The translations under genes were made by a program, and so were the position numbers. A DNA stretch of 63,690 nt, the filler included, from Ministeria vibrans ATCC 50519 (lineage: Eukaryota > Protista > Filasterea): the NCBI GenBank assembly GCA_943704425.1. It is 7 parts of 7 records of this genome, joined end to end, with 100 filler letters (N's around TTAATTAATTAA, not from the genome) between each part and the next. Parts side by side here need not be neighbours in the genome. Positions count along the whole stretch, not along the records: positions 21,661 to 39,671 come from CALSCP010000173.1; 6 more parts are not named here. One strand, given 5' to 3'. Each line of letters starts with the position of its first letter. Position 1 is the first letter of the stretch. Shown here piece by piece: positions 21,484 to 37,800 of this stretch. Below the pieces are notes generated by a model, which was not told the origin of the DNA, did not search any database, and was given only the letters and a program-made list of their open reading frames with translations.

Positions 21484-21728
21484 GTACTGTCTGACTGTGT
21501 GTGTGTGTGTGTGTGTGTGTGTTTGTGTATGTTTGTGTGGTAGGTGGATGCGGATGGAATNNNNNNNNNNNNNNNNNNNNNNNNNNNNNNNNNNNNNNNN
21601 NNNNTTAATTAATTAANNNNNNNNNNNNNNNNNNNNNNNNNNNNNNNNNNNNNNNNNNNNGTTTCTCTCACTTGTTTCTCTCACTTGCTTCTCTCTATAT
21701 CACTTTGTTTCTTTCTCTCTATCACTTT

Positions 21729-21777
<49 letters not shown>

Positions 21778-21793
21778 CTCTCTCGTTGGGTAC

Positions 21794-22677
21794 GTTGTCA
21801 TAGCGGAGAAGCTGCAGAAAGCCGGGCAGCCAAATACCCATGTTGTCTTCAAAGTGTTCCGGAAGGTCTTGTGCGTTGAGGCTGTTGAAGATCTTGGCAA
21901 CAAGCAGAAGCATGCGCGTGACAATCTCCAGGTTCGCTTTGTCGTTTTCGTACAGTGGAATCATGCCCATAAGCGACTGAAACAAGGCAGTGAAGGGCTC
22001 GGCGAATACGTCGAGCACGTACTTGATCTCCTACGCGCGCAACTCTGTCATCTTACTGTCGTCTCATTCATTTCAGAGGTACCTGCCAAAGATCTTCGGA
22101 TTTGAACTCATGACGATACCGCTTGAAGATGTCATGGAGCGTGCCGAGGACGCCGGTCATGACATGGACGTCGTTGGAGGCGAGCTTCTGCACCAGGTTG
22201 GGCAGGAGATCCTGCCACGACGTGGGGAAGTCGGCCTGGCAAATAGTGCCGACAGCGGTGCTGAGAACCTTTTGGATCTGCGGCGGCGCGAGCAGCATCA
22301 GATCGACGATCTGCTGCTTGACCGTGTGCTTGTCTGCATCGCACACCGGTTCAAACGCGTCCGACCAGAACTTCTTGACGTAGTTCTTGAGGACTACGGC
22401 CGCCATGAGACGCACGCTCATGGCAACAGACTGCTCGCCGACGATGCGCAGCAGCAGCGTCGAGTAGCCTGCCGTTGTCTGGTGCGCTGTGAGTTGCGCC
22501 TCGGCTGAAACCCAAAACGAACCTGAGTTGAGTAGACGCACGCAAGCACAGGTGGGAGCCAACGACACGCTGCCAATCTTGCCGGTTGGTGCATACAGGC
22601 AGGGTATTGCGCGCCGCCTTGCTTAAGCAAAGCACACTCATCCAAAAAAAAACGCAAAACGTGTCGTTTCGTTTTTG

Positions 22678-22713
<36 letters not shown>

Positions 22714-22949
22714 GAGAGACGTTTGAAACAGTCTCGATATGACACACACGGCCGCGATTCAATGCCGGAAATGCGCTGGATCACACTATTGTGAACATTT
22801 GAAAGCAGCGCAGGGCGCAAAGGGCACAGCGAACGACCGGATTGTCGCGAGCGGATTTTGAAAAATTGATTCCAACCTTCTCGATTGGCCATGCCGGCTT
22901 GTTCGAGGAGCGCCGCAAGAGACTGGAGGTTCTCTGGGGTTGGTTCCAT
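21794..22949 (-). CDS. CSE1L: Exportin-2 (CSE1/CAS), N-terminal part
   Basis: Importin-beta N-terminal LKNYVKKFW; DFPTSWQDLLP; IFKRYRHEFKSEDLW; KIFNSLNAQDLPEHFEDNM. Confidence 0.93.
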
Positions 22950-23109
22950 CGCGATAGAAAGACAAGGAAGAGTCTTATCAATGAAGGCTAAAGAATAAAA
23001 GAAATTAATTGTTAATTGAAATGTGTTGTGACTATTGACTTATGACTTTGTAAGTTATGACTTGATTTGATTGATTATGACCACATTATGACTACGAATA
23101 GTCGAATAC

Positions 23110-23230
23110 TATAGGCTTCTTTCTGGACATTCTCATCTTAAGTCTACGGCGGAAGTATTCAGTATTGCGGCTCTTTGTTTTGTATAGTTTTGTTTTGACA
23201 TTGAGTACAGCTCTCGATTCTCTATTTTTT
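23110..23230 (+). repeat. Dispersed ~90-120 bp intergenic repeat, copy 1 of 3
   Basis: GTCTACGGCGGAAGTATT...CTCTTTGTTTT...TTTTGACATTGAGTACAGCTCTCGATTC recurs near 41770-41890 and 43552-43630. Confidence 0.85.
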
Positions 23231-23387
23231 TCTCTAATAAATTTGGTTTCAGTTTGTTTTGACTTTTTGCCTTTTGGTATACAAGATTATAATTTTGCGA
23301 AACAAACACGGATGACGGAGTATTAGACGGTCGGGGTGCATTGTTGGTTTGTTGCGTGGTGACTTGTATTAATTCTTGCATTGCATC

Positions 23388-24757
23388 TCATTGGCGAGAA
23401 CGATTATTGTCACGACGAGAAGGTGGGTTCTGCTGCGACTCGCGCTCGTGTTGCTGGTCAGAAGAAGTGCGTTGCGCCGGGGGCACGCCAAGTTTGAAGC
23501 GATGGGAATGGCGGGGACTCGACGAAGCCTGCCAAAAGCCACGCTGTTGCTCCTGTCGAGGCGACGACGGCTCCGACCGAGGTTTCGGCTGGTGTTGATG
23601 ATTGTTTTGATGCTTCTGTTGTTGTGGGTGAACGTAGTGAGGTGATCGTCCACGATTCGAGGGCCCTCCGCGCCGATGTTGGAAATTTTTCTGCTCTTGA
23701 TTCTGGTGCTGGCGGTGTTGGGGTCGGGAGAAGACGTTGGCGCCTGGACTGGGTGTTGGGGAGTCTGTCTCGTCAAAGAGATGCTCGGTGGTGGTGGAGA
23801 GCACACGGATGGGAGAAAGGTTGGGCACCGGGCCGACAGCGGAGGAGCGCATGGAAAGCAACTGTGCATTTTTGTTGAGGCGAGCGCGATGGGTTACCAT
23901 GGACAAGTCGAAGCGGGTTGTCTCGGGGGGGTTGAAGGAGAGGGGTATAAGGCGCGGAGAGAGCTCGAGCAATGGACGCTCCAAGAGCGGCATAGACAAG
24001 AGTATCTCGGGGAGTTGTTCGGTTCGCGAGTTGTTTTCCGTTCCCACGACAAACTTGTCGTTGGCGCGGACCACAAGAGGCATTGCAGCGAGGGCAAAGC
24101 CATACTCCATTTGCACACGATGCAGAGCTTTCTTGTTGTACTGGAGGAGCATTGTGCGGTCCCACTTGCTCCCCATGGGGCGAACAATGACAGGATAGTT
24201 ACGCGCAAGCACTCGAATGCGATAGGTGCGCGCAAAGACGACCGTTTGGTCAGTGGTACTGGGCGGGACAACCACCGCATTAGCGGGAATGGGCAGACCT
24301 CGATTGGTGTACACTTTCGACAGGAGATCGTTCTGTTCGGGGGTATTGGTGAAGCGCTTGTGGAAGGACACAGTGTACGCGTTGAGGGTTGACCAGTAGA
24401 TCAGATTGGCTGCGTCCTACGCAAATGGGCAGTGCGTACACAAGAGTGCAAGTGTATGAGAAAGTGAGTGAGAGGTGTGTATATGAAGAGCGTACTGTGA
24501 TGGAGAGGGCAGGGGAGAACCCAGAGACTGCCTTGTTGCGAAGGGTTTTGCTCTTGACGGTACGGCCGGCAATGGACGTCTGGCGGATGACGACAGTGGG
24601 TATCGTGAGGGGGTGGCAGGACCACTCGTAGGTGTAACGAAGGACGCTGTGAATGACTTCGATGGGAAGACTCTCAAGGTGAGGCGCGCGCAGAAAGGCC
24701 AGGCGCCGGTAGGGGTAAAAGCGTGCATTGATGGGGTTCTCGATGAACTCTCGCGCT
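23388..24757 (-). CDS. Unknown protein with Q/R/S-rich disordered tail, 5' partial
   Basis: Open exon 24757 to about 24496 splices to about 24416-23388 (DAANLIYWSTLNAYTVSFHKRF...). No family recognised. Confidence 0.6.
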
Positions 24758-24885
24758 GTAAATAAAAATCAGAAAAAAATGTCAGAGGGGGGGGNNNNNN
24801 NNAAGATTTGTGAATAGTGAGAAATCGTGAGTGACTGATTTGGACTGTGTTTTGGACTCTTGTGTTCTTCTTTGCATTGTCTTAG

Positions 24886-27800
24886 CGGGTAAGATTTGTG
24901 AATAGTGAGAAATTGTGAGTGACTGATTTAGACTGTGTTTTGGATTCATTCTTTTATGGATTGCAGACCGTGCGATCTGGAAACGAGATACAAACGAACT
25001 GTTACAGGCGTTCTACAGAGTGACAAAAGGTGTTGAGATTGCTTTTAAAGAATATTTGTCTGAAACTTGTTTTCTTTTAGATTCGTAAGAGATATAAGCG
25101 AATACGGCCCTATTCCTGCACTCAATTTTTGGTCTTGTTTGTCAGTGACGCAATCTTTAAGTCGGCGTTCAAGGCGGCCCTCTCCCGCGGCTCAGTCGAG
25201 TCGCACTCACTCAAGGTGCTATTCCTGGGCGCAGTGATGGCAGGCAAGACAGCACTTCTTGCGGCTCTACAGGGACACACACTGCCCAAAACAGAAGACC
25301 GTTCAGTGGCGACACGAATGCAGCGGGTGCGACTTGTCTTCAACAGTGAAGGCTTCTTTGAGGCTGTGCCGCTCGAGGAGTACCGTTTGGCCAGCATGAT
25401 CGCCACGTCAAGGGATACCACGGCCGCGGACACAGGCACCGACGAAGGCGAAGTGCGTACGGAGGCGTCGCTGAGCCCTTCTGTCGCGGTTCTTCCATCA
25501 GCCGCAACAACACCCGCGTCCTCTTCAACAGTCATCCCCGATGCAGCCGCGTCCTCTTCGGCAGCCATCCCTGCTCCACCCGCCACCACTTCCACCCCTA
25601 CTCCCCTGACCATGAGCGCCGTCCAAGATCTTCTCATGGGCGAGCTGAGCGAACAGCACGTCGACCTCGACACTTTCGACTTTGCAGGTGAGGGTTTGTA
25701 GTTTTAGTTTCTTTTCTTAATCTCACACTCACTTAGGCGAGCCAATGTTTGACTCCCTTCCCGCTCTCTTCATGGGCTCCGAGTCCGCCTACATCCTCGT
25801 CTTCGATCTGTCCGTCATGGACGATCCTGAACAAGCACAGCGACAGTACGAGCACCTGTCCAAGTGGGCCCATCTCATCGCCCACCAGGTGCCCGAGTCG
25901 CTCTCGTCCTACTTCCGTGTGCTTATTGTGGGCACTCACGTTGACATGTTCCCCGAAGACACTGTGCCACCCCTTCTGCTCCGCACTGTCGCGCGTGAAG
26001 TGAACAGCCTTGTTCTGCGCGTTTTGGGCAAGCATTTAATTATCCCTGCGTCTGGCCGTGCGCCGTTCTTCCAAGTGGGCAGCAAGAAGCGCATTGGCCT
26101 CGCAGCACTGAGCGAGGGGATGCATGCTGCGGTGCGTGCACAGACACTGCCACTGGAGTATGTGTGTGCGCGGGACTTGGTCGGTCGGTGGGCGCGCATG
26201 GGCCGCATTCAGCTGCTGTCGTCTGTTACCGAGCTGTCGACTGTGCAACTCAGCGAGACCACCCCCATCATCACAGTGGGTGCACTGGTTCCCGATGAGG
26301 TCGCACTGCGCACGGGACTGGTGCCGTACATGGAAGAGGCCGCCGACGTGCTGGTGTGCCGCGAGGACTCGAGTGAGCGTCGAGTATGCGCGACAGACAC
26401 GATCGTGTTTGATGTGCCACGACTAATAGCGGCCGTGGAACTGTTGTGCTCGGTGGTGATGGCGCGCTGGGGGAGAGCGACGGGTGAGAGAGCACAGGAC
26501 ATGCTTGATTTGGTGACCATCGCCGGACAGAGACTGGACCCTGAAAAGACGGGTGAGCTCCTTGCGCAACTGGACGAGGCACGAACCCACTCCGAGGAGG
26601 GGTTTCCGATTGAGGTCGCCCAGTGGCTCTTGTGGACAGCGGCCGCGGGTGAGGCGAGTGGAGAACCTCTGCTTGCGGGTGCAGACGTGACAAACGCGAA
26701 TGTGCTCTTCACGGCACTAGAGCGACTGAGTCTGGTGTTCCGATGCGGGACTCGACTTCTCGTGCCAATGCTCCTGCCCGAAGATGCACCGTTCGTGGAG
26801 AGTGCACGGGCGCCTATTCAAGTCCTGCTCTATCAAACGGTGAAGGGAACCGACGGCTCACTCAAGCTGCTCCCCGTGTCACTGGCGACCTTTCACCTGG
26901 TTGTGGTGGCACTGTGGCGAGAGAGCGTGAAGGACAGTGCGATCCGGGCCTCACAGCGTTGCACGAATGTACTTGTGATGGAGGGCTGTGCGCCTGTCCG
27001 TGTGCGCCTGAACACCAACGAGCCATTCGTCCGTGTGGAAGTGTTTGAGGACGGTGGACCGCCTGAGCGAGTGATGGTGACGCTAAAGCGGGTGAGTGAG
27101 CGAGTGTGTGGGCAGACACGTAGTCTGCGATGGGGATGGCGTGGCGAGCCCGTCCTTGTGCCTGTGAATCCGTTCAACGTGGCGCTGCCGCTCTTCTCCC
27201 CACTCAAGGTGGCCGCCAACCCCGATCACTATCACGAGGCGGCAACTGTGTCGAACGAGATTTTGGTGCACCCCGACGAGACACGCGTCTGCAATGAGAC
27301 ACTGGAAGAGTGGTGGACCAAGCGTGTTGGTAAGAGAGTGTAAGCCCACCTTGTTGGGTCTTACTTTGATATATATTTAGGCACTGGGACGGGTCAGCAG
27401 TACTCGCATGCAGCCGCTCTCATTGTGGGTGTGAGTCGGTTCTCTTCGACAAAAAAGTCACATTTGGCTATGTTCTCTGATTTGCCAGGTGTGCGAGACA
27501 GTGTAGTCGAGCTAGAGGCGCTCTGGCAGGGTCGCGGGTTCAGCGTGCAGAGTGTGACAGACAAGACACCCTCCGATCAAGTGACGAAAGAGGAGATTAC
27601 CAAGGCTGCTCAGCGTCTTGTTCGCGATGTCGGTGACAAAGCCGGCCGGGACTCGCTCCTCATTGTGCACTTGCTTGGCCATGGGGTGGGGGACAGAGAT
27701 GGTGGCCTTGTTCTCAGTGACGCCCATCGACCGAAGTTCGCGTCTGGTCAGTTCGGACGGCACTCCCGCTTTGACGCCGACTCGCTCAAGGGCCTGCTTC

Positions 27801-28213
27801 GTGGAGACGCGGGCTGGCTCGGCTGCAATATTCTCGTGGTGTGCGATTTCTGCAACTCCGGCACGCTGCTCAAGGACGACGCTGACCTAACCATGTCCAG
27901 CCCCGTCGCGCGGTTGGGCTACTCTCGTCAGACAATCCTCAGTTCGCTCCCCGATACCCCCAGCTACATGTCACTAGACGGTAGGCGTACACGTCTGACG
28001 GAGTTGCTCGTATCTGCTCTGGGTCCCTCACTCGAGGCATTCCGTGTCGGTGAGGAGCATATCACTGCCGTCGGCCTGCGACAGAGGCTATGCTCGCTGG
28101 ACAAGAAGAACACCTTCCAGGCGATGCTCGTGGGTCGCATTTGGGATGAGTGGTCGGGCACGCGAAACGACGGAGACATCTTCTTGTTCAAGACTGGATC
28201 GGGAGTTGCGTGA
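24886..28213 (+). CDS. Roc-COR (ROCO) GTPase with C-terminal caspase-family (peptidase C14) domain, 5' partial
   Basis: Exons 25146-25687, 25737-27329, 27381-28213 in frame, plus small upstream exons. Roc: GAVMAGKT, VAT, DFAG, VGTHVD. COR-like: TIVFDVPRL, LERLSLVF...LLVPMLLP. C14: ALIVGVSRF, DLPGV, VTKEEI, VHLLGHG, VVCDFCNSG. Confidence 0.88.
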
Positions 28214-28339
28214 GCTAGAGACAAAGAGAGGTGGAGAGGGGTATAGAGAGCATGTATTTATTCTTATTACACTGATTTACTCCCATTTTTACTGGTACAT
28301 TTTTTTAATTAAACTGTTACATGTGTTTATGTTTTTGTT

Positions 28340-29041
28340 TTTTTAAACTTTCAAGTGACTTTCATTGATGCAAGCCAACATAAGCCTCTCAATCTATACT
28401 ATGTTGTCGCGTATCAATAGCTACACTGCTGACCAAGAAGACCCAAGACCCCCATCCCTCTCATCCTACAACCCACACTCAGGTTGTTTGGTAAGAGTTT
28501 TACAAGTTATTTTCCTCTCTCTCTCTCCACAACACTTTTTGGAAAACAAAAACAAAAACAAAACATCACTCCTCCTCATGCGGAATCCGATCCCACCGTG
28601 GAGGGGCGTCACGAAGTGCCGTAACGCGTAGTGGCTCTCTCTCTCACTTACTCACACACACACACACACACACTCTCTCTCTCTCTCACTCTCTCACTCT
28701 CTCTCTCACTCTCTCTCTCTCCGTTGTTGTCGTTCATTTTTTAATTAAACTTTCAAGTGACTTTCATTGATACAAGCCAACATAAGCCTCTCAATCTATA
28801 ATACAGTGACGCGTATCAATATTGAGCTACACTGCTGACCGAGAAGACCCAAGGCACCCATCCCTCTCACCTAACATCCCACACTCAGGTTGCTCGGTAA
28901 GAGTCTCTCCACAATGAAACTGGAATGAAACTACTACCCCTAGGGAAAACAAAAACAAAAACAAAACATCACTCCTCCTCATGCGGAATCCAATCCCGCC
29001 GTGGCCCGTGGAGGGCGTCACGAAGTGCCGTAACGCGTAGT

Positions 29042-29050
<9 letters not shown>
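28340..29050 (+). repeat. Diverged tandem duplication (~300 bp units), each ending at a CT microsatellite
   Basis: AAACTTTCAAGTGACTTTCATTGAT...GGCGTCACGAAGTGCCGTAACGCGTAGTGGCTCTCT at about 28345-28645 and 28747-29050. Confidence 0.85.
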
Positions 29051-29086
<36 letters not shown>

Positions 29087-29093
29087 TTTTCAG

Positions 29094-29607
29094 ATTTGAA
29101 TGTACAGAACGAATCAACGCCCATCCCGCTCCCCAATGTATCTGGGCCCATTCTGAAAAAAGTCATTGAATACTGCGAGGTATTGTTACACAACGAATGA
29201 AAAGCGCTGACTGTTGTCGCTTGCATTTGAATAGCGCCACAAGGACGACGCAGAGCCTGTTGAGGGCACAGACACTCCCGATATCTCGCCTGACGATGCC
29301 AATTTTTGTCAAGTGGACCAGGGAACTCTCTTTGACGTACCCGATTGAATGTGCTTTGTTTCGCTGCTCATGACTCGTTTTGTTTTTCATATTTTCTCTT
29401 CTTCTACTTTGACTGGCTCAGATGATTTTGGCAGCTAACTACATGGACATCAAGGGGCTGCTGGACCTCACATGCCGCACCGTCGCTAACATGATCAAGG
29501 GCAAGACTGCACCTGAAATCCGCCAGACCTTCAATATTGTCGATGACTTTTCGCCCGAGGAAGCGGCGCAGGTCAAGAAGGAGAACGAGTGGTGTGAGGA
29601 GAAGTGA
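29094..29607 (+). CDS. SKP1: S-phase kinase-associated protein 1; first exon not found
   Basis: [19 protein letters not shown]; VDQGTLFD|[47 protein letters not shown]...ENEWCEEK. Confidence 0.95.
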
Positions 29608-29712
29608 TGATGTTTCGTTTTTTTTACTCCCAGTGTACAAACAAAACGTTTTTTTTTTCGTATTTTTTTTTCTACATGTTTTCTCTCTCTTCATATTCAC
29701 CATAGAGAGTGT

Positions 29713-30046
29713 TTACAGGACGTTCCACTTGCCTGTGGCACGGTAGGCAACGACGAGACGGCGGGCCATCTTTTTCACTTTAGCGTCCGGATCGTTGTAC
29801 ATGTTCTCGGCCGCCTCAACGACGCGCTCCTCCAGCCTGCGTGGCGACCCGTCTCCGAGCGCATGCAGTGCCTGCATGCGCACTGGTCCAATGGGATCAC
29901 GCGTCAACTCAAAGATGCGCTCCCACAGCTCGCCAATGTCTGCCCGCAGATGGCACGGGCACATGTCCTTGAGCGCACTCTGGCGCTCCCTTGCACATTC
30001 CGATCGCGATCGCCGCAAGAATTCCTAAGCAAGCATTTATTCCATA

Positions 30047-30119
<73 letters not shown>

Positions 30120-30209
30120 TGGGTGTGGGTGTGGGTGTGTGTGAGTCCTGGACGGTGGCGATACCTCAATAGCACGCTCAGCTTCATTCAGTTCACACAC
30201 CCACGTCAT
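29713..30209 (-). CDS. Small HEAT-repeat-like protein with CPC motif
   Basis: Exon MTWVCELNEAERAIE splices to EFLRRS...MCPCHL...WERIFELTRDPIGPVRMQALHALGDGSP...NDPDAKVKKMARR...TGKWNVL*. Confidence 0.75.
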
Positions 30210-30417
30210 CACATGAAATCGACCTCTTTGAAAGTGTGTGTAGAATGAGTTATTCAAAAAACCCAAAAGGAGACACAAAAACACGAAAGAGGGGAAAATA
30301 AATTGAAATTTAATGGAGAAAACAAACGAACCCCAATAGAATATTAATTATGCAATCTCACACGCAACTGATTGATTTCGAAACCCAAAAAAAAAAACCT
30401 TACAATCACCTGTAGAC

Positions 30418-31355
30418 TTAGAGGGACGGAGGGGGAGTCAAAGACATGGGTGGAGCAAGGGGATCGCGCGGAAGAAAGCCGGGACAAGCGGGTGCGCGGC
30501 AGTGGCAGGGTCGAGTGCTTGTGTGGGGCGTCGCATTGGCGTACGAGAAGGTGAGCTCTGTGTCGCGCTGGATGGCTGTGTGTGCAAACAGGGCGAGTAG
30601 GGGTACGACACTGGTGCCCATGTGTGCAATGCGAGTCGTCAGGTTCGGCGCGTGGCTGTGGTTGATGAAACGCGCGACGTTGCTACAAAGTGTTGCTATC
30701 TTAAGAGCCCTTCACAGCAATAATCTGCTCAATATAAAGCATACCCGTGCTTTGTAGGATCTAGATTGGTACGGACAACCTGGTCTCCACTGCATAAACG
30801 CCCCCACAAGAAAGTCAATTCGGGTTAGAATTCAAAAAAATTCAGCTCTCCTCTTTCTTTCTCCCACAGTCCCACTTCACTTACTAGTACTCCCGGACAA
30901 CCATGACATAGTTGCACTCATCGGTGGTCTCGCAGAGACGCTGGCGCGCCTCGGCATCGCCGGTGCGCACGACAGCGCCAGCATACGTGCACACATAGGC
31001 GCCCGCTGCAATGTCCCGTCCGGCATACGCGCCCCAGCCACGCCCGTCCGTCGTTCGACGAACCACAATCGGAACACCGATTGATTCGTCGGGTGGCACG
31101 CCAAGGTCGGCTGCCGACTCCCACGCTGCAAGGCGCGAGGAGAGGAAGCCCTCGTCAAGACTGTCTCCGCTGCTGCTCACCCTGGACACGCAATACTGCG
31201 CCAATGAAGACAACCCATCACATCACATCAAAGAAGAAGACGCATCTGCATCTACGAGCGTAACTCACCTTGAAAGGCTCCGGTGGAGAGCCTCCATCCA
31301 CTTCAACAGCAACAGCAAAGGGCTCTTCGCCACAGCTCAAATCCGTCCAATTCAT
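30418..31355 (-). CDS. SET-domain lysine methyltransferase (SETMAR/SUV39-like) with post-SET
   Basis: GRGWGAYAGRDIAAGAYVCTYAG; NVARFINHS; ELTFSY; CHCRAPACPGFL. Confidence 0.9.
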
Positions 31356-31360
31356 CTCAT

Positions 31361-31411
<51 letters not shown>

Positions 31412-31805
31412 GCCACCCTCTGTCACGTTGAAAAGAGAAATGTGATAAGTGATTATTGTGTGAGTCTGTGAGAGTGAATATATATAAAAGTTAAATCCCA
31501 CGGAAATGAAAAATATATAGAACAATGTGAAGAGTAATACAATGCTTCTGCCATAAGCTTATTAGACTAGCCCCAACTCTCAAGAAGATGGAGCACCCAT
31601 AATCCATATACCCACAAAATATATTTTATTGAAGAAGAATACAACCCATTTATTACTAATAATTATTATTATTATTATAGTCTTCTTCTATTATTATTAA
31701 TATAATAGTATATTATTATTATTATTAAATTATTATTATTATTATTATTATTCTCTATTCTAAATTAATTTTATTATTTTCTTATGATGTTTAATAAGAA
31801 ATGTT

Positions 31806-34800
31806 TTACACGGTTCCAAGAGCTGAATTGGACCAGAGAATGAGGGTCTGGGGCGACCGATAGAGATAAATGAGCTCGGCAAAGAGTGCCTCTTCGAGAT
31901 CAAGGACATTCTCCTCACGCGCATCGTAGATGTCCTGACAGAGCTTCTCAACGGCACTCACGTGCGGAAGACAGGTAAAAAGAATCTGCTGCGCGGCATT
32001 GGACATGGCCAGGCGAAGGAAACGGCCCACCACGAGCACAACAGAGACGTACAGGCCAACCACTCCCGAACTGGCGACAAACGACAGCGACGCAGACGCG
32101 GCACGCTCGCTAAACGACACAAGCTGCGGACGCAAAGGCTCGATGGGAACCGAGCCAGAGCTGTCGGGCACCACCAACGGCGACGACTGGTCCAGCTCCC
32201 ACCAGGAAACCACATCGTCCGTGCCGTTCGACAGCGATCGCAACACCGCCGTGCAGTTCACCAGCGACTGGGTCAGCACCGGGTGCAGCACCCCCGAGAT
32301 GGGCACTTCGACAAAGGCCGGGAAGAGATTGGGCAAAAACACAGCCCCCTCGCCCGCATCAAGCACATCCACAAACGCCTGGCGTGTCGCCTCTCCCGGC
32401 GCATACAGCGTCTCGTACGTGCCCAGGATCTCGGCGGTGACCAGCGCAGTCGGCGGCGACCGTGTGTACTCCATCTTCATGCGCAGAAAGGCAGTGCCCG
32501 TGCCGTTGGCCAAGAACCCATGCAGGTCAGCAATGTCGGGCGGCGACGCAGCCCACAGCGATCGGCTGGCCACCGTGAAACGGGCACTCGTCATGTCGGA
32601 CGCCTGGTACAGGCCCACAATGCCCCCGTACGTGTCTTGCAGTGTCCCCGCTTGCGCATCCGTCAGCGTCGTCAGCACATTGGCGGACGCCGTCATCTCC
32701 CACAACGGCTGGTAGCCAATGAAGCCCAGCGACACCGTCACAATTTGAGGCTGCACAGGAATGGCCGACGAGCGCACAAACGCCATAAGGAGCAGTGGCA
32801 GGAACAACAGCATGACGAGGAGCGTCGTGAGCGTAAGTCCCTGACAACATTTGCTGCCCTGCGGTCGCACATTGCCGTGCTTGGCGCGGTTCTTCTTGCG
32901 GCTCAAGTTGCGGCACTTGATCTGATACAGCTGAATCCAAATGTCCTCCATCTGAATCCAGTCGCGAAGGTACAGCGTTGTGCGCGTCACAGCCCAGTCG
33001 GTGATCATGCGAAGCTCAAAGAGGAACGGTATCGCCAAATAAATCGAGAAGAGGAGCTGCGAGCCAGTCGACAAAGAGCGCGTCAGGGCATTGCCGCCCG
33101 TGTGGCGCGGATAGCCGTGCCGGATCTGCAGCGCAGAGGCAATAAAGTAAAGGCTCTTGCACACGTACCAGAGCACAAGGACACTCGAGGCGGCAAAGGG
33201 ACGATGTGCAATGACAAAGGGCGTCAGGAAGAAGAGCCACACATGCACAAATATCACCAGAACCCACTGCAGCGCAAGCTTGAAACGCAGATCCCGCGCC
33301 AGGTACAAACACCTGTCAAGCACAAGCAGGAGCGCCTGCACCAGTAGCGCAATCACAAAGGTCAGCGGCACATTGTTCGTCGTCACAATGTTCGCAATGT
33401 TGCCCCCCTGGTCTTCCTGAAAGGCCGACCAGCCAAAGATGAGCACGAGGTAGGACAGGAGATCACTCATAACCATTGCCATGTACAGATCACGCCGATA
33501 CATTGCACCGGGTCGTGTCCACGCTCCCGCCGCACGCACCAGTCGTTGCCAGCGTGTGCCCGTCGCGCGCCCCGACGCACTCGCACTCGCTGACGAGCCA
33601 CCCACACTCTCTGCGTACTCACTCTCACTCTCGACGCCAACATGCTCCTCCTCCTCCCCCCCTCCAACCCCAACCATGCCCGCCTGCGCACTGTTCTTTG
33701 ACGACGACGACGACGTGGCACGCTGACGTGCCTGACGCTTCTCATGTGCTGCAATGCGCGCACGCGTCAACTCAGTCGACTGGCCACGCCACAGTCCAAT
33801 TTGTCGCAGGTTACTGCGATGCATCAGAATCGTCACGATCACCACAAGGTAGCCACTCAAATGGTACAGCGAACTCGAGTCATTGGTGCGCTGAATGCCA
33901 AAGATGGCCGAGCCGCTGTTGTACGGCACGTTGACATTGAACGTCCAGCAAGGAAGCTGGAAAAAGTAGATGAAACACACACAAATCTCAGCGTAAAACA
34001 GCATGCTCTCGTAGAACCAGGCAGGCGGACGGGGACGCAGCACGGAGAGGCCGCAGAACAGCACCACGGCAGGAATCACCGCCAGCACCGTCGCATTTGC
34101 GGCAGCCAGTGCAATCACCGAGATGTACACGAGCCAGTGTGAGTAGGCCGAATAGATGAGTGACAGGTGCGCCAAGAACACCGCGACGCGTCCATCACGC
34201 GCAATCACGGGTCGCTCTACTCCTAATGCCTCTCGATGATCATTCGACACCTGCGACATCACTCCCAAGAGCGCGTCCACTCCCTGCAACATCAGCATAC
34301 CCACTTTGCGCATTGTCGTCGACGCACGCTTGCCCAAGTTGGCCGCAGTCGACGACGATGGAGTGGGAATAGCCGCCGTCTGAGTCGTCAACTCAAGGGC
34401 CCCCTTCTCTTCAGCATTCTTTGTGTCCGTCGATACAGCAGCAACATCGTCCGCGGCATCATCACCGCCATCAGGTACCCCTGCGCTAATGTCACCTGCA
34501 TCGTGGTCACTACCGTCGCCTTCCCAGCCGGAAGGAGCCGCGTCATCCAGCAAGTGCGACGACTCGCTATGCTCACCTCGGCCAGCATGCTGCCCTTCTT
34601 CGTCCTCCTCGTCGTAATCGTCGTCGTCCACAACCATATCAAAGCCCACAAGCAGACCACGTCCCGTGCCACTGCCGTGTCCGGCGCGTGACGATCCACG
34701 AGGTCGCGACTGCGACGGAATTCCCAGCCGAGTCTCACGCTCGGCCTCCTCGCGCGCATCCTCTTCCTCCTCGCGTGCCACGCCTTCTAGCAAGGCCACG

Positions 34801-37800
34801 GGATCGTCTTCGTCCTCGACATCAATATCATCGTGTCCCAAGTCACTCGGTCCCTTCGACGACGACACCGACACCGACTGTGGCACGCGTCGTTGTCGCA
34901 GGCCACCCGTTGCAGTCACAGGCACACCATTTGCGTCCACCACACCCACTGTGCCCAACAGGACCACGTCGGCCGACGACATCATTTCACCTCCGCCTTC
35001 TTGGCCTTGTCCATGCTGTTGTTGTACTTGTTGCGATTCGTCCGCCTTGTGCGCAGCAGTGCCGCGCAATCGACTCGCCACAAACTCTTCGCTCTTGGCC
35101 TGAGCGGCACGATGAAGCTCCAAGAGTGCGGCGGGATCCTCAAAGAGCCGCTCGTGGCCTGTGCCACCGCCCGTCTCGGAGAGCACCTTCTCACGATGCA
35201 TTCGCAGCATACGCACGCGCTCGCGTGTTGCACGCAGGTACGTCGCTTCGGCAATCAGTTGGTTCTTGAGTTCCTTGCGCTGGTGACGCGCAATGCGACG
35301 AGCATTCCCGTGAGCAAGACGACGCTCGCGACGCAAATCGGCGGCAACCAGGTCGGACGCACGCGACTGGAAAAGACGGCGTTGCACAATGAGGAAGGCA
35401 AAGAGAATCACGTCAAAGAGAATGCCACGCGAACTCCACGCCGCCACCGTCGCATTCGGGTTGGCCGTGTCGCTGTCGCTGCCGTGCAAGGCCATGCCCT
35501 GACGCAAGCCAATCGTGTTGATGGTGGTGATCACCGACTGCGGTTGTAGGCCCCAGTCGATGCAGGTGGCGGGCAGCTGCCATATCATGCGGATGAAGAG
35601 CACCACCGTGGTGTAGCCAAACAGCATGGTCCACCGCTTTCGACCCGCCACCACGTTCATAATGAGGTACTCGCCCGAAAACAAACACACCATGCTCGTG
35701 GCGACATAACCAAAGTTGAGAATCGTCACGTCACCGGCACCCGCAGAGAAGCCAAAAATGAGACAGATCCAGTACCACCACGAGTAGAAAGCCATGGTGA
35801 GACTGGCCGCGAGCGATCGAGGGCGCTTGACAAAGTCCCAGGCGTGCAACGACGTGTCAAGACGCAGTGCAAACACACGACGCTGCTGCAGCATGAGCGC
35901 CAGCAATGTGATGTCGGCGCCCAGCACAACAATGAGTTGACCGGGAGGCATCCACAGCCACACACGCATGTTGCTGAGCCAGTACGACGTGCCCGCACCG
36001 TAAAAGGGATAATTGACGTAGTCCGTGAAGGAAGGGGGCACGGCCAGAGCCACCGCGTACTGCACCACCAGGAGGAACGCATAGGCACGCACAAAAGCTG
36101 TCCAATGTGCACGCAATTTGCGACGTGACATTGCCACCCACGAGACGGCAAGCAGCAACTGAACAACACCAATGACGTTGAGACGCACAAAGGCGGCGAC
36201 CACCGCCGCAATGGTGCACAGTTCAAGACCAAAAGCTGCAAAAAGATTGGTAAAAATACCACGGAGGCACCAAGAGAGCGAGTCGTCGCTTCGCTCTGTC
36301 TCCATAAACGGTTCCATCGGTCGCATTGGGTCGTACGTGCGTCGACCAGCGCGCACCTGCTCGCGACGGTCACAGCGTTCACAGGCACGTCGCATCCATA
36401 GCACAATAAGAATGATGATCCCTGGAATGACTGCGCCAAAGTTATCGTTGTACTTGTCAAGCCCGATCCACGGGGCGTCCGAGACAGCGTCGGGCGCACT
36501 GCCGTTGTAGTGCGGATTGAGAATGATCGCCGAGGGCAGCACATAGGGCACCTGATAGCCAAGTTGTGCAACCGTGATAAGCGCCACCAGAGGGCCTGCA
36601 ACAAAGCCAAACCAGCCGGTGAGACTTGGACCCAACATCCACGCCTCGATCGCCACCACAACACAGAGCAGCATGCCAAAAAGCGACGCGTTGGTCGACA
36701 CCAGCGCCAGGGCAAACACCGACACGAAGGCCCACGTGGGAATCTGTTGGGCAAGCATGCGACGACCCATGGCACAGGCGGCCAAGATCATGCCGGCCCA
36801 GCCAGCGTCGGACGTCATGGTAAGGTCGTGGGCACTAATGTTGTCTTCGAGCGCCACCAATGGCATGTCGAGCGCGTCGGGTTCGACAGCTGGAAAGAGA
36901 CGCGCGCGCAAGAAGGCGCCGGCACTCACACGATGACGCATTGATGTGGCGCGTGTCTCAAGCACGAGCGTCAAGAGAACGAGCGTCGGGCCCACAAGGT
37001 AGCGGAAGAGATCGAGGCCCGAGTGTGTCTCAAATCCAATGGCACGCAATCGGTCGTCGGAGAGCACCTCGAGAAAGAGCGACTGCACTTTTTCAAACTG
37101 GTAGGCGTACATGGAGACGACGGCCAGCACCGACAGGGCCACGGCGGGCAACAGGAACAGTGCCACGCCGCGCTGCGGTCGTGTCATCGTCGCATGAAAC
37201 ACCAGAAAGACAGTCAGGAAAAAGAGGAAGCCACAGTGAATGGCGGTCGAGGCACCCGCCACGCTCACAGCAAACAGCGTTGCGTAGCACACCAGAAAGA
37301 AGTAGTCAATGAGTAGCAACTTGATAAAAAGAATCACGCTGAGAAGTGACCAACCAGACTGCGTAGCACCACCACCCCTTGTTGAGGCGGTGGCATTTTC
37401 GGCAGCAGCAGCGGTGGCGGCAGCAGCAGCAGCAGCAGCAGTCGCCGAGGAAGATGGCGACCCCAACGGTGAGTGTGCATTCTCGCTCAAGGTGTCACGT
37501 CGCAAAAGGGGGCCGTCACCCGAGCCGCCCATGGCAGCGGCGGCAGCAATCGCTTCGGCTTCCTCGCGCTGAAGCGAACGAGCCGCACGATACACGTGCA
37601 GCTGGATCACAACAAGCATTTGCACGGCAATGCTCCAGCCAATCTGGTTAATGAGGTTCTCGGCGGGATCGTACAGACCAATGACCTGTTCGGTACTCAC
37701 CGAGAGAATTCCCTCGCTCCAGGTGAAGCGCCACAGATACTGCACGAGAACAACACCTTCGCAGTAGAAGACGAGCGCAGGCCAGAGGGGCTCAGCAATG

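Follow-up and report, generated by a model that had tools for sequence, protein, structure and literature searches.

A transcribed gene of Ministeria vibrans predicted to join a Roc-COR GTPase to a caspase-like protease in one chain

The DNA analyzed here is a stretch of 63,690 nucleotides, filler included, from the Ministeria vibrans ATCC 50519 assembly GCA_943704425.1 (the whole stretch is called the window, and all positions are counted along it). The part taken from record CALSCP010000173.1 (positions 21,661 to 39,671) carries, on the plus strand, a gene of the ROCO family that is real, expressed and eukaryotic. On reading of the sequence, three long open frames are linked by two short GT-AG introns, and the encoded chain is predicted, from sequence and structural models, to run from a Roc GTPase through COR-A and COR-B to a C14 caspase-like protease with an intact catalytic dyad. 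The original prediction for this locus, made from the sequence alone, had proposed such an architecture of Roc, COR-like region and C14 dyad, and this architectural part was borne out wherever a test was possible; translation and sequence reading recovered the G1, G3 and G4 motifs that it named and showed that the positions it gave for the catalytic His and Cys were exact. The features of the locus are collected in Table 1.

Table 1. Features of the ROCO gene and its surroundings, in positions of the window
Feature	Position	Strand	Basis
327-codon open reading frame, Gln/His/Pro-rich C-terminal part, no Pfam match	23388-24371	-	Pfam scan
Assembly gap (N)	24795-24802	.	sequence
Two tandem intron-like repeat copies	24803-24859, 24891-24947	.	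repeat family D9
Upstream coding exon, tail of a degenerate WD40-like blade (..IADRAIWKRDTNELLQAFYRVTK)	24958-25029	+	RNA, open frame
Micro-exon ATTC, 4 nt	25081-25084	+	RNA X6, X8, X10; genomic tttag/ATTC/gtaag
Exon 1, Roc N-terminal half	25146-25687	+	translation, alignment A4
Intron 1, 49 nt, GT-AG, phase 1	25688-25736	+	joint in RNA X6, X8, X10
Exon 2 (central exon), Roc C-terminal half and COR	25737-27329	+	RNA-joined
Roc C-terminal half: switch II, G4, G5-like	25737-26143	+	profile against PDB, Pfam Roc in relatives
COR-A-like, winged-helix and helical, exon-2 residues ~140-345	26156-26773	+	AlphaFold model, 3dpt_B
COR-B-like, alpha/beta, exon-2 residues ~345-530	26774-27329	+	6vp6_B, 3dpu_B, 3dpt_B
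Intron 2, 51 nt, GT-AG, phase 1	27330-27380	+	joint in three RNA runs
Exon 3, caspase-like, stop codon 28211-28213	27381-28213	+	PF00656, RNA
3' untranslated region and poly(A) addition site	28214-28297	+	loose ends with A-run after 28297, X6/X8/X10
Skp1 gene	29422-29604	+	Pfam E 1.5e-26
Piezo channel gene, uninterrupted 2563-codon single-exon open reading frame	31806-39497	-	named relatives

The structure of the transcript was evaluated with RNA-type contigs from three runs (X6 and X8, under one organism label, and X10, under another; years 2011 and 2025) and with contigs of a DNA run (X2), all placed on positions 24803-28500. The joint that removes intron 1 (25685>25735, cut +2) was found in all three RNA runs and not in the DNA run, where a contig continues unspliced across the intron from 25353 to 25801. 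The joint that removes intron 2 (27328>27380, cut +1) was also found in all three RNA runs, on contigs of 1.8-2.2 kb, and the DNA run lacked it. Each RNA run yielded a contig made up of 26436-27328 joined to 27380-28297 and followed by an A-run. Because this contig crosses the spliced intron 2 and ends in poly(A), the caspase exon and the central exon are carried on one spliced, polyadenylated mRNA. Both introns preserve the reading frame, and an in-frame stop at 27341-27343 inside intron 2 would terminate the protein if the intron were retained. Retention of intron 2 with a stop at 27343, and transcription of the protease exon on its own, were among the outcomes that the original prediction had named as fatal to it; the first is excluded by the splicing seen in three RNA runs and the second by the poly(A)-ended contig.

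The same contigs bear on the question of whether two adjacent genes, one for a GTPase and one for a protease, or a bacterial contaminant, have been misread as a fusion. Such an artefact would be favored by the assembly gap and high-copy repeat that lie directly upstream and by the bacterial neighbors of the protease domain (described below). However, a single RNA contig spans 26436-28297 over a spliced intron, the introns are short spliceosomal GT-AG introns at positions that recur in relatives, and the same exon order is present on independent contigs. An artefact is already refuted for the Roc-COR-caspase part of the gene, the 5' extension excepted, and as a whole we regard it as very improbable.

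The Roc domain was searched one exon at a time. Exon 1 contains the G1 motif GAVMAGKT (25228-25251), an invariant switch-I-like Thr (of ATR, 25312-25314) and, from 25678, the G3 motif DFAG, the Gly codon of which is split by intron 1, and exon 2 contains the G4 motif THVD (25934-25945) and a G5-like GSK (26078-26086), so that a Ras-like Roc domain with G1-G5 motifs, as in ROCO proteins, can be read from the gene. Between G1/switch I and G3 lies a low-complexity insert of ~70 residues rich in Ser, Thr, Pro and Ala (~25408-25626), which has an internal 33-nt repeat (25511-25576) and is present in all relatives with a highly variable sequence. The matches of exon 1 were weak: E 0.0022 for the TIGR00231 small_GTP model, 0.15 for Pfam Roc, and 0.8-1.4 for the Chlorobium tepidum Roco structures 3dpu/6hlu. 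Single exons stay under the Pfam gathering score because the intron and the low-complexity insert split Roc; three members of the family were matched by Pfam Roc (best E 2.9e-4), and some exon-2 relatives were matched by Ras (0.007).

A profile of exon 2 compared with all PDB sequences gave eight weak matches, of which six were the Roc domain of LRRK2, and no Ras, Rab or Arf was among them. In the alignment to LRRK2 Roc, LVFDLS and VGTHVD of the family correspond to LAVYDLS and VGTHLD, and the combination of DFAG with GTHxD is the LRRK-type signature. There was no match to STAND families (NB-ARC, NACHT) in Pfam, NCBIfam or PADLOC, and the domain with the P-loop is of Ras-like type. The protein may function like an apoptosome or an NLR, yet it is not one of these STAND proteins.

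The COR domain was recognized by its predicted fold. The AlphaFold2 model of exon 2 had a mean predicted local distance difference test score (pLDDT) of 75.9 and a predicted template modeling score of 0.71, with residues 140-530 mostly above 85 and the COR-A-like region mostly above 80. A Foldseek search with this model returned LRRK1, LRRK2 or C. tepidum Roco as all of its top 26 matches, LRRK1 coming first (5e-6) and C. tepidum Roco and LRRK2 next. With VIA-align, the Z score was 14.3 to the C. tepidum Roc-COR tandem (3dpu_B), compared to 7.6 or less for unrelated folds, and 13.8 to the isolated C. tepidum COR (3dpt_B), with 282 of 299 residues aligned; both alignments reach model residue 529/530. 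The COR-B of LRRK2 (6vp6_B, residues 1670-1860) corresponded to model residues 343-528 with a Z score of 6.9. The ESM Atlas neighbors of exon 2 were all clusters with COR-A, Roc or COR-B (top score 0.96), and phmmer of exon 2 against PDB gave nothing. What had been described as a COR-like region is, according to the fold match and the ESM Atlas neighbors, a real COR-A/COR-B; it lies directly C-terminal to Roc, as in ROCO proteins, and escapes detection by sequence hidden Markov models (HMMs).

With Pfam Peptidase_C14 (PF00656, clan CD), exon 3 scored 34.3 bits, above the cut-off of 21.4 (E 2.5e-8), and the same family was matched by 7 of 13 relatives. This score and the recurrence of intron positions and exon order in relatives speak against a chance reading. 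Exon 3 also matched NCBIfam NF047832, the EACC1-associated bacterial caspases, with E 3.7e-9 and 36.4 bits against a cut-off of 140, and judged by this match it is a domain of a type related to NF047832, below the level of membership. The catalytic His lies at 27680-27682 (in LGHG) and the catalytic Cys at 27851-27853 (in DFCNSG); in exon-3 numbering they are H100 and C157, and 13 sequences share them without exception, along with the neighboring LLxSDA and RQ motifs. When the family profile is aligned to Arabidopsis metacaspase-4 (AtMC4), the dyad falls on VVHYSGHG and DSCHSG, which agrees with the earlier claim of an intact His/Cys dyad in a D-x-C context of the meta/orthocaspase type.

The nearest neighbors of the protease domain are bacterial. 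The 30 nearest ESM Atlas clusters of exon 3 were all bacterial caspase-family clusters, nearly all with Pfam Peptidase_C14. When genome contigs were scanned with the exon-3 alignment (A3), a single locus was found, in Streptomyces triticirhizae (L005:5920-9954, NZ_RFFJ01000045.1), and no bacterial Roc-COR-caspase was recovered. The Streptomyces locus encodes 1344 residues with an N-terminal caspase-like domain, a NACHT-type P-loop domain (NPHP3_N) and C-terminal WD40 repeats. Its caspase domain has 35% identity to exon 3 over ~100 residues (hhalign 95%, E 2.7e-8), and the dyad aligns to LLIVHLLGHG and DTCEAG.

A search of exon 2 against 1.84 billion representative proteins gave only four matches, all of them close relatives, and therefore exon 2 appears to be a sequence-orphan outside its own small family. 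Seven further near full-length open reading frames with 52-74% identity were obtained in a profile search, and a profile scan of metagenome contigs with alignment A5 gave no relatives. Four metagenomic contigs (L001 to L004) were examined. L001, L002 and L004 are separate scaffolds from one sample and stem either from a small multigene family or from several closely related organisms. In all four contigs the P-loop exon is followed by the central exon, and all four share the exact position of the donor DFAG/GT. On L001, L002 and L004 the segments of exon 2 and exon 3 form adjacent frames, and L003 ends before the caspase exon; both intron positions are conserved in L001 on reading of the sequence. 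At 25976, 26018 and 26137 of the window, contigs from RNA and from DNA split off into nearly but not fully identical sequence (e.g., ..CTGCCACTGGAATATGTGTGT after 26137), which suggests that there are expressed paralogues in the same organism.

Upstream of the P-loop exon, all four contigs have frames with WD40 repeats (L001:291-1884, L002:572-2081, L003:1108-2400 and L004:1-436), which are supported by Pfam on L001 and L003, by the recorded families of the upstream gene on L002, and by eye only on L004. In these relatives every WD40 repeat has an exon to itself and the intron follows GH[ST][KE], and on L001 and L004 the last, degenerate WD40 blade can be read as spliced in frame to the P-loop exon by a canonical intron. 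Judged by these contigs, the family architecture is WD40-Roc-COR-caspase.

The conservation within the family bears on whether both enzymatic modules are functional. G28, A32, G33, K34, T35, T56 and the DFA of G3 are invariant in five loci (alignment A4), and T66, H67 and D69 of G4 together with G114 and S115 of the G5-like motif are invariant in eight sequences, down to 52% identity. Conservation of the G motifs and of the dyad down to ~50% identity argues for selection on both the GTPase and the protease activities. It might nevertheless be that the modules are fused but uncoupled, with Roc being a pseudo-switch or a constitutive dimerization scaffold, or the caspase-like domain being a non-catalytic binder. 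The ~70-residue insert within Roc would fit this, as would a COR too divergent for HMMs and the variation of the residue that follows DFAG (Glu here and in L001, L003 and L004; Gln in L002), given which hydrolysis may be weak. Uncoupled modules are nonetheless improbable in our estimation, in view of the invariance of the core G1 residues, T56 and DFA in the five loci, of the G4 and G5-like residues in the eight sequences, and of the His, the Cys and their surrounding motifs in 13.

The gene does not start at 25146 as first proposed, since the RNA continues 5' of this point through the micro-exon and the upstream coding exon of Table 1. The micro-exon is bordered by AG and GT, lies between introns of 51 and 61 nt, and is needed for the reading frame (..TK-D-S-DAIF..); with it, the frame of the upstream exon is open (IADRAIWKRDTNELLQAFYRVTK). 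A start at the ATG at 24956, spliced straight to 25146, was considered and ruled out, as the micro-exon puts that frame into TGA at 25146. The RNA alignment begins at 24958, before which X6, X8 and X10 have loose ends, and the true acceptor is probably between 24966 and 24967 (ttgcag/ACC), because the nine nucleotides GGATTGCAG apparently also terminate an unseen upstream exon. It was also observed that these nucleotides (24958-24966), seemingly present at both places, resemble a target-site duplication.

The RNA extends at least 119-140 nt 5' of 24958, and these upstream letters were matched nowhere within the window. As there is also an assembly gap at this place, the further 5' exons of the gene are missing from the assembly here. 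The two tandem repeat copies between the gap and the gene are 95% identical; the whole copy starts with GTAAG (from 24885) and the other abuts the gap. Their summed depth in the DNA run was ~22,700, compared to 50-100 nearby, and the repeat is therefore a high-copy, possibly introner-like element. The upstream exon of the window has 35% identity to the tail of the last WD40-like exon of L004, a weak match over a short overlap. With a gene model that is truncated at its 5' end and WD40 exons in all four relatives, the protein of the window is itself most likely WD40-Roc-COR-caspase, its WD40 part being inferred.

Around the ROCO gene, the minus-strand open reading frame at 23388-24371 is a diverging neighbor across the assembly gap. 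Past the 3' end of the ROCO gene and before Skp1, a segment of ~400 bp is duplicated in tandem (28335-28700 and 28737-29105); its matched stretches have 80-97% identity, and it carries CT/CA microsatellites. The closest named relatives of the Piezo channel are animal Piezo proteins (34% identity), followed by that of Thecamonas (31%); this similarity lends slight support to a position near animals, with which it is compatible and of which it is not proof.

A model can be proposed for how such a protein would work. The WD40 propeller would be the sensing or autoinhibitory module, and Roc-COR would be a nucleotide-driven switch that, like its counterparts in other ROCO proteins, alters both its conformation and its oligomeric state. 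This change would bring together or unmask the C-terminal protease domains, leading to cleavage of substrates or to self-cleavage. Under this model the protease would be controlled by GTP. In the C. tepidum Roco, GTP favors the monomer, so that the switch might work in either direction.

The layout of sensor repeats, NTPase and caspase, as in bacterial conflict proteins and the apoptosome, together with the divergent paralogues, makes a defence or death role the most likely one, and we suggest that this is a sensor-switch-protease gene that triggers cell-autonomous defence or regulated death, to which we would give somewhat better than an even chance. This suggestion is supported by the nearest bacterial caspase domain, which sits in a caspase-NACHT-WD40 protein, and by the bacterial Roc-COR proteins with caspase effectors, which have been read as counter-invader systems (PMC8195603). 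The relatives on separate scaffolds of one sample and the branching contigs point the same way. The same architecture could instead belong to a protease of regulated signalling or housekeeping, or to a scaffold, in which the GTPase localizes or times proteolysis, in the manner of the paracaspase MALT1 or of metacaspases that serve proteostasis and the cell cycle instead of death. The characterized ROCO proteins (LRRK1/2 and the Dictyostelium Rocos) act mainly in trafficking, the cytoskeleton and signalling (PMC6337361), the gene is expressed in ordinary culture RNA in three runs, and the neighboring Skp1 and Piezo genes give no hint of a defence island. In contrast, the nearest sequence and feature neighbors of the protease domain are bacterial conflict-system caspases, and divergent paralogues with one WD40 repeat per exon are reminiscent of receptor families, for example the ROCOs of brown algae (PMC11378527). 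We prefer the defence or regulated-death role and consider a signalling or housekeeping protease possible but distinctly less probable.

Several points weigh against a defence or death machine of this design. Metacaspases and orthocaspases usually act as monomers, and it is Ca2+ or processing, not proximity, that activates them, so that the analogy to the apoptosome may fail; furthermore, many metacaspases function outside cell death. All that is visible of WD40 in the window is the tail of a degenerate last blade and the WD40 exons are unseen, and an in-frame ATG in the RNA consensus, 27 nt upstream of 24958, leaves room for a short isoform or paralogue without WD40. The Pfam COR-A and COR-B HMMs matched neither exon 2 nor any of 15 relatives, and the COR assignment rests on a predicted structure, the input of which was a shallow alignment of 15 sequences (33-79% identity). 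A single-sequence AlphaFold2 model of exon 3 had a pLDDT of 35.7 and was unusable for recognition of a caspase/haemoglobinase fold. A predicted complex of two COR copies (residues 140-530) scored 0.00, which is evidence neither way.

A more far-reaching and, in our view, rather doubtful proposal is that this WD40-Roc-COR-caspase multigene family, possibly holozoan-related, is a GTPase-based, single-chain counterpart of the apoptosome and NLRs, in which a ligand on the propeller flips Roc-COR and so activates the fused protease to kill or defend the cell. If this is true, the family would be a third, independent class of eukaryotic NTPase-driven death and immune machines, beside the STAND ATPases and the death-domain ROCOs. 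The origin of the module may lie in bacterial conflict systems, by inheritance or by transfer.

The gene would be of use beyond the question of its own role. The ROCO field is driven by LRRK2, and how Roc-COR controls its output domains is still debated; a fused protease offers an output that is easily read as cleavage or toxicity, in a simpler system than a kinase. The gene is expressed, conserved and part of a small multigene family, and public DNA and RNA runs exist, so the hypothesis should be testable. The architecture places sensor, switch and caspase in one eukaryotic chain, with a GTPase in the place of the STAND ATPase, and it forms a bridge between the conflict systems that Kaur et al. 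predicted in bacteria and the death and immune machinery of eukaryotes.

Animal ROCOs have a kinase or a death domain at the output position, and in bacterial ROCOs this place is taken by toxins, among them caspases (PMC8195603). LRRK1, LRRK2 and DAPK1 are like the gene described here in having a Roc-COR tandem (structural Z 8-10), and LRRK2 shares the DFAG and GTHxD motifs; however, their output is a kinase, the WD40 domain of the LRRKs is C-terminal, and DAPK1 signals death by means of a death domain, without a fused protease. The C. tepidum Roco (PDB 3DPU, 3DPT, 6HLU) is the best structural match of exon 2, over 282-290 residues and the whole COR, but at 9-10% identity, and it has no protease and LRR repeats at its N terminus.

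There is also a close likeness to bacterial LRR-AP-GTPase(Roc)-COR proteins, among the listed C-terminal effectors of which is a caspase (Kaur, Iyer, Burroughs and Aravind 2021, eLife; PMC8195603). In work that was wholly computational, these were predicted to act against invaders and to occur as many paralogues in a single genome. In those that end in a caspase, a repeat array, Roc-COR and a caspase-like effector follow one another in a single chain, as they probably do here, but the bacterial proteins are prokaryotic and carry LRR, whereas the present gene is eukaryotic, with spliceosomal introns and poly(A), and its relatives carry WD40. Roc-COR here is without detectable sequence similarity to the bacterial proteins, the comparison with which is by description only. 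The original prediction regarded the architecture as uncharacterized, which has to be qualified: Roc-COR-caspase has been predicted in bacteria, and the papers searched contained neither a Roc-COR-C14 protein from a eukaryote nor a variant with WD40 in front.

Among eukaryotes, the ROCOs of brown algae and other SAR lineages ('group 3') have a C-terminal trypsin-like S1-type peptidase (IPR009003), have one repeat per exon, and were proposed to be immune receptors, with exon shuffling also proposed (PMC11378527). They share with the gene here a eukaryotic setting, a protease as C-terminal output and repeat-per-exon arrays, but their protease has the serine fold of clan PA and their repeats are LRR, as opposed to C14 here and WD40 in the relatives. 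Arabidopsis metacaspase-4 (6W8S) and the other metacaspases and orthocaspases share the His-Gly and D-x-C-x-S-G motifs, with the dyad aligned, although the PDB profile match to metacaspase-4 had an E value of only 0.016 and the feature neighbors of exon 3 are bacterial clusters, unlike those of eukaryotic metacaspases. The Apaf-1/caspase-9 apoptosome and the bacterial caspase-STAND-WD40 proteins follow the same logic of a WD40 sensor, a P-loop NTPase and a caspase-type effector, but their switch is a STAND ATPase (NB-ARC or NACHT), the domain order is reversed compared to that found here, and in the animal apoptosome the caspase is a separate chain recruited by CARD. In its three functional modules the S. 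triticirhizae protein matches the protist family, with a STAND switch and in the reverse order.

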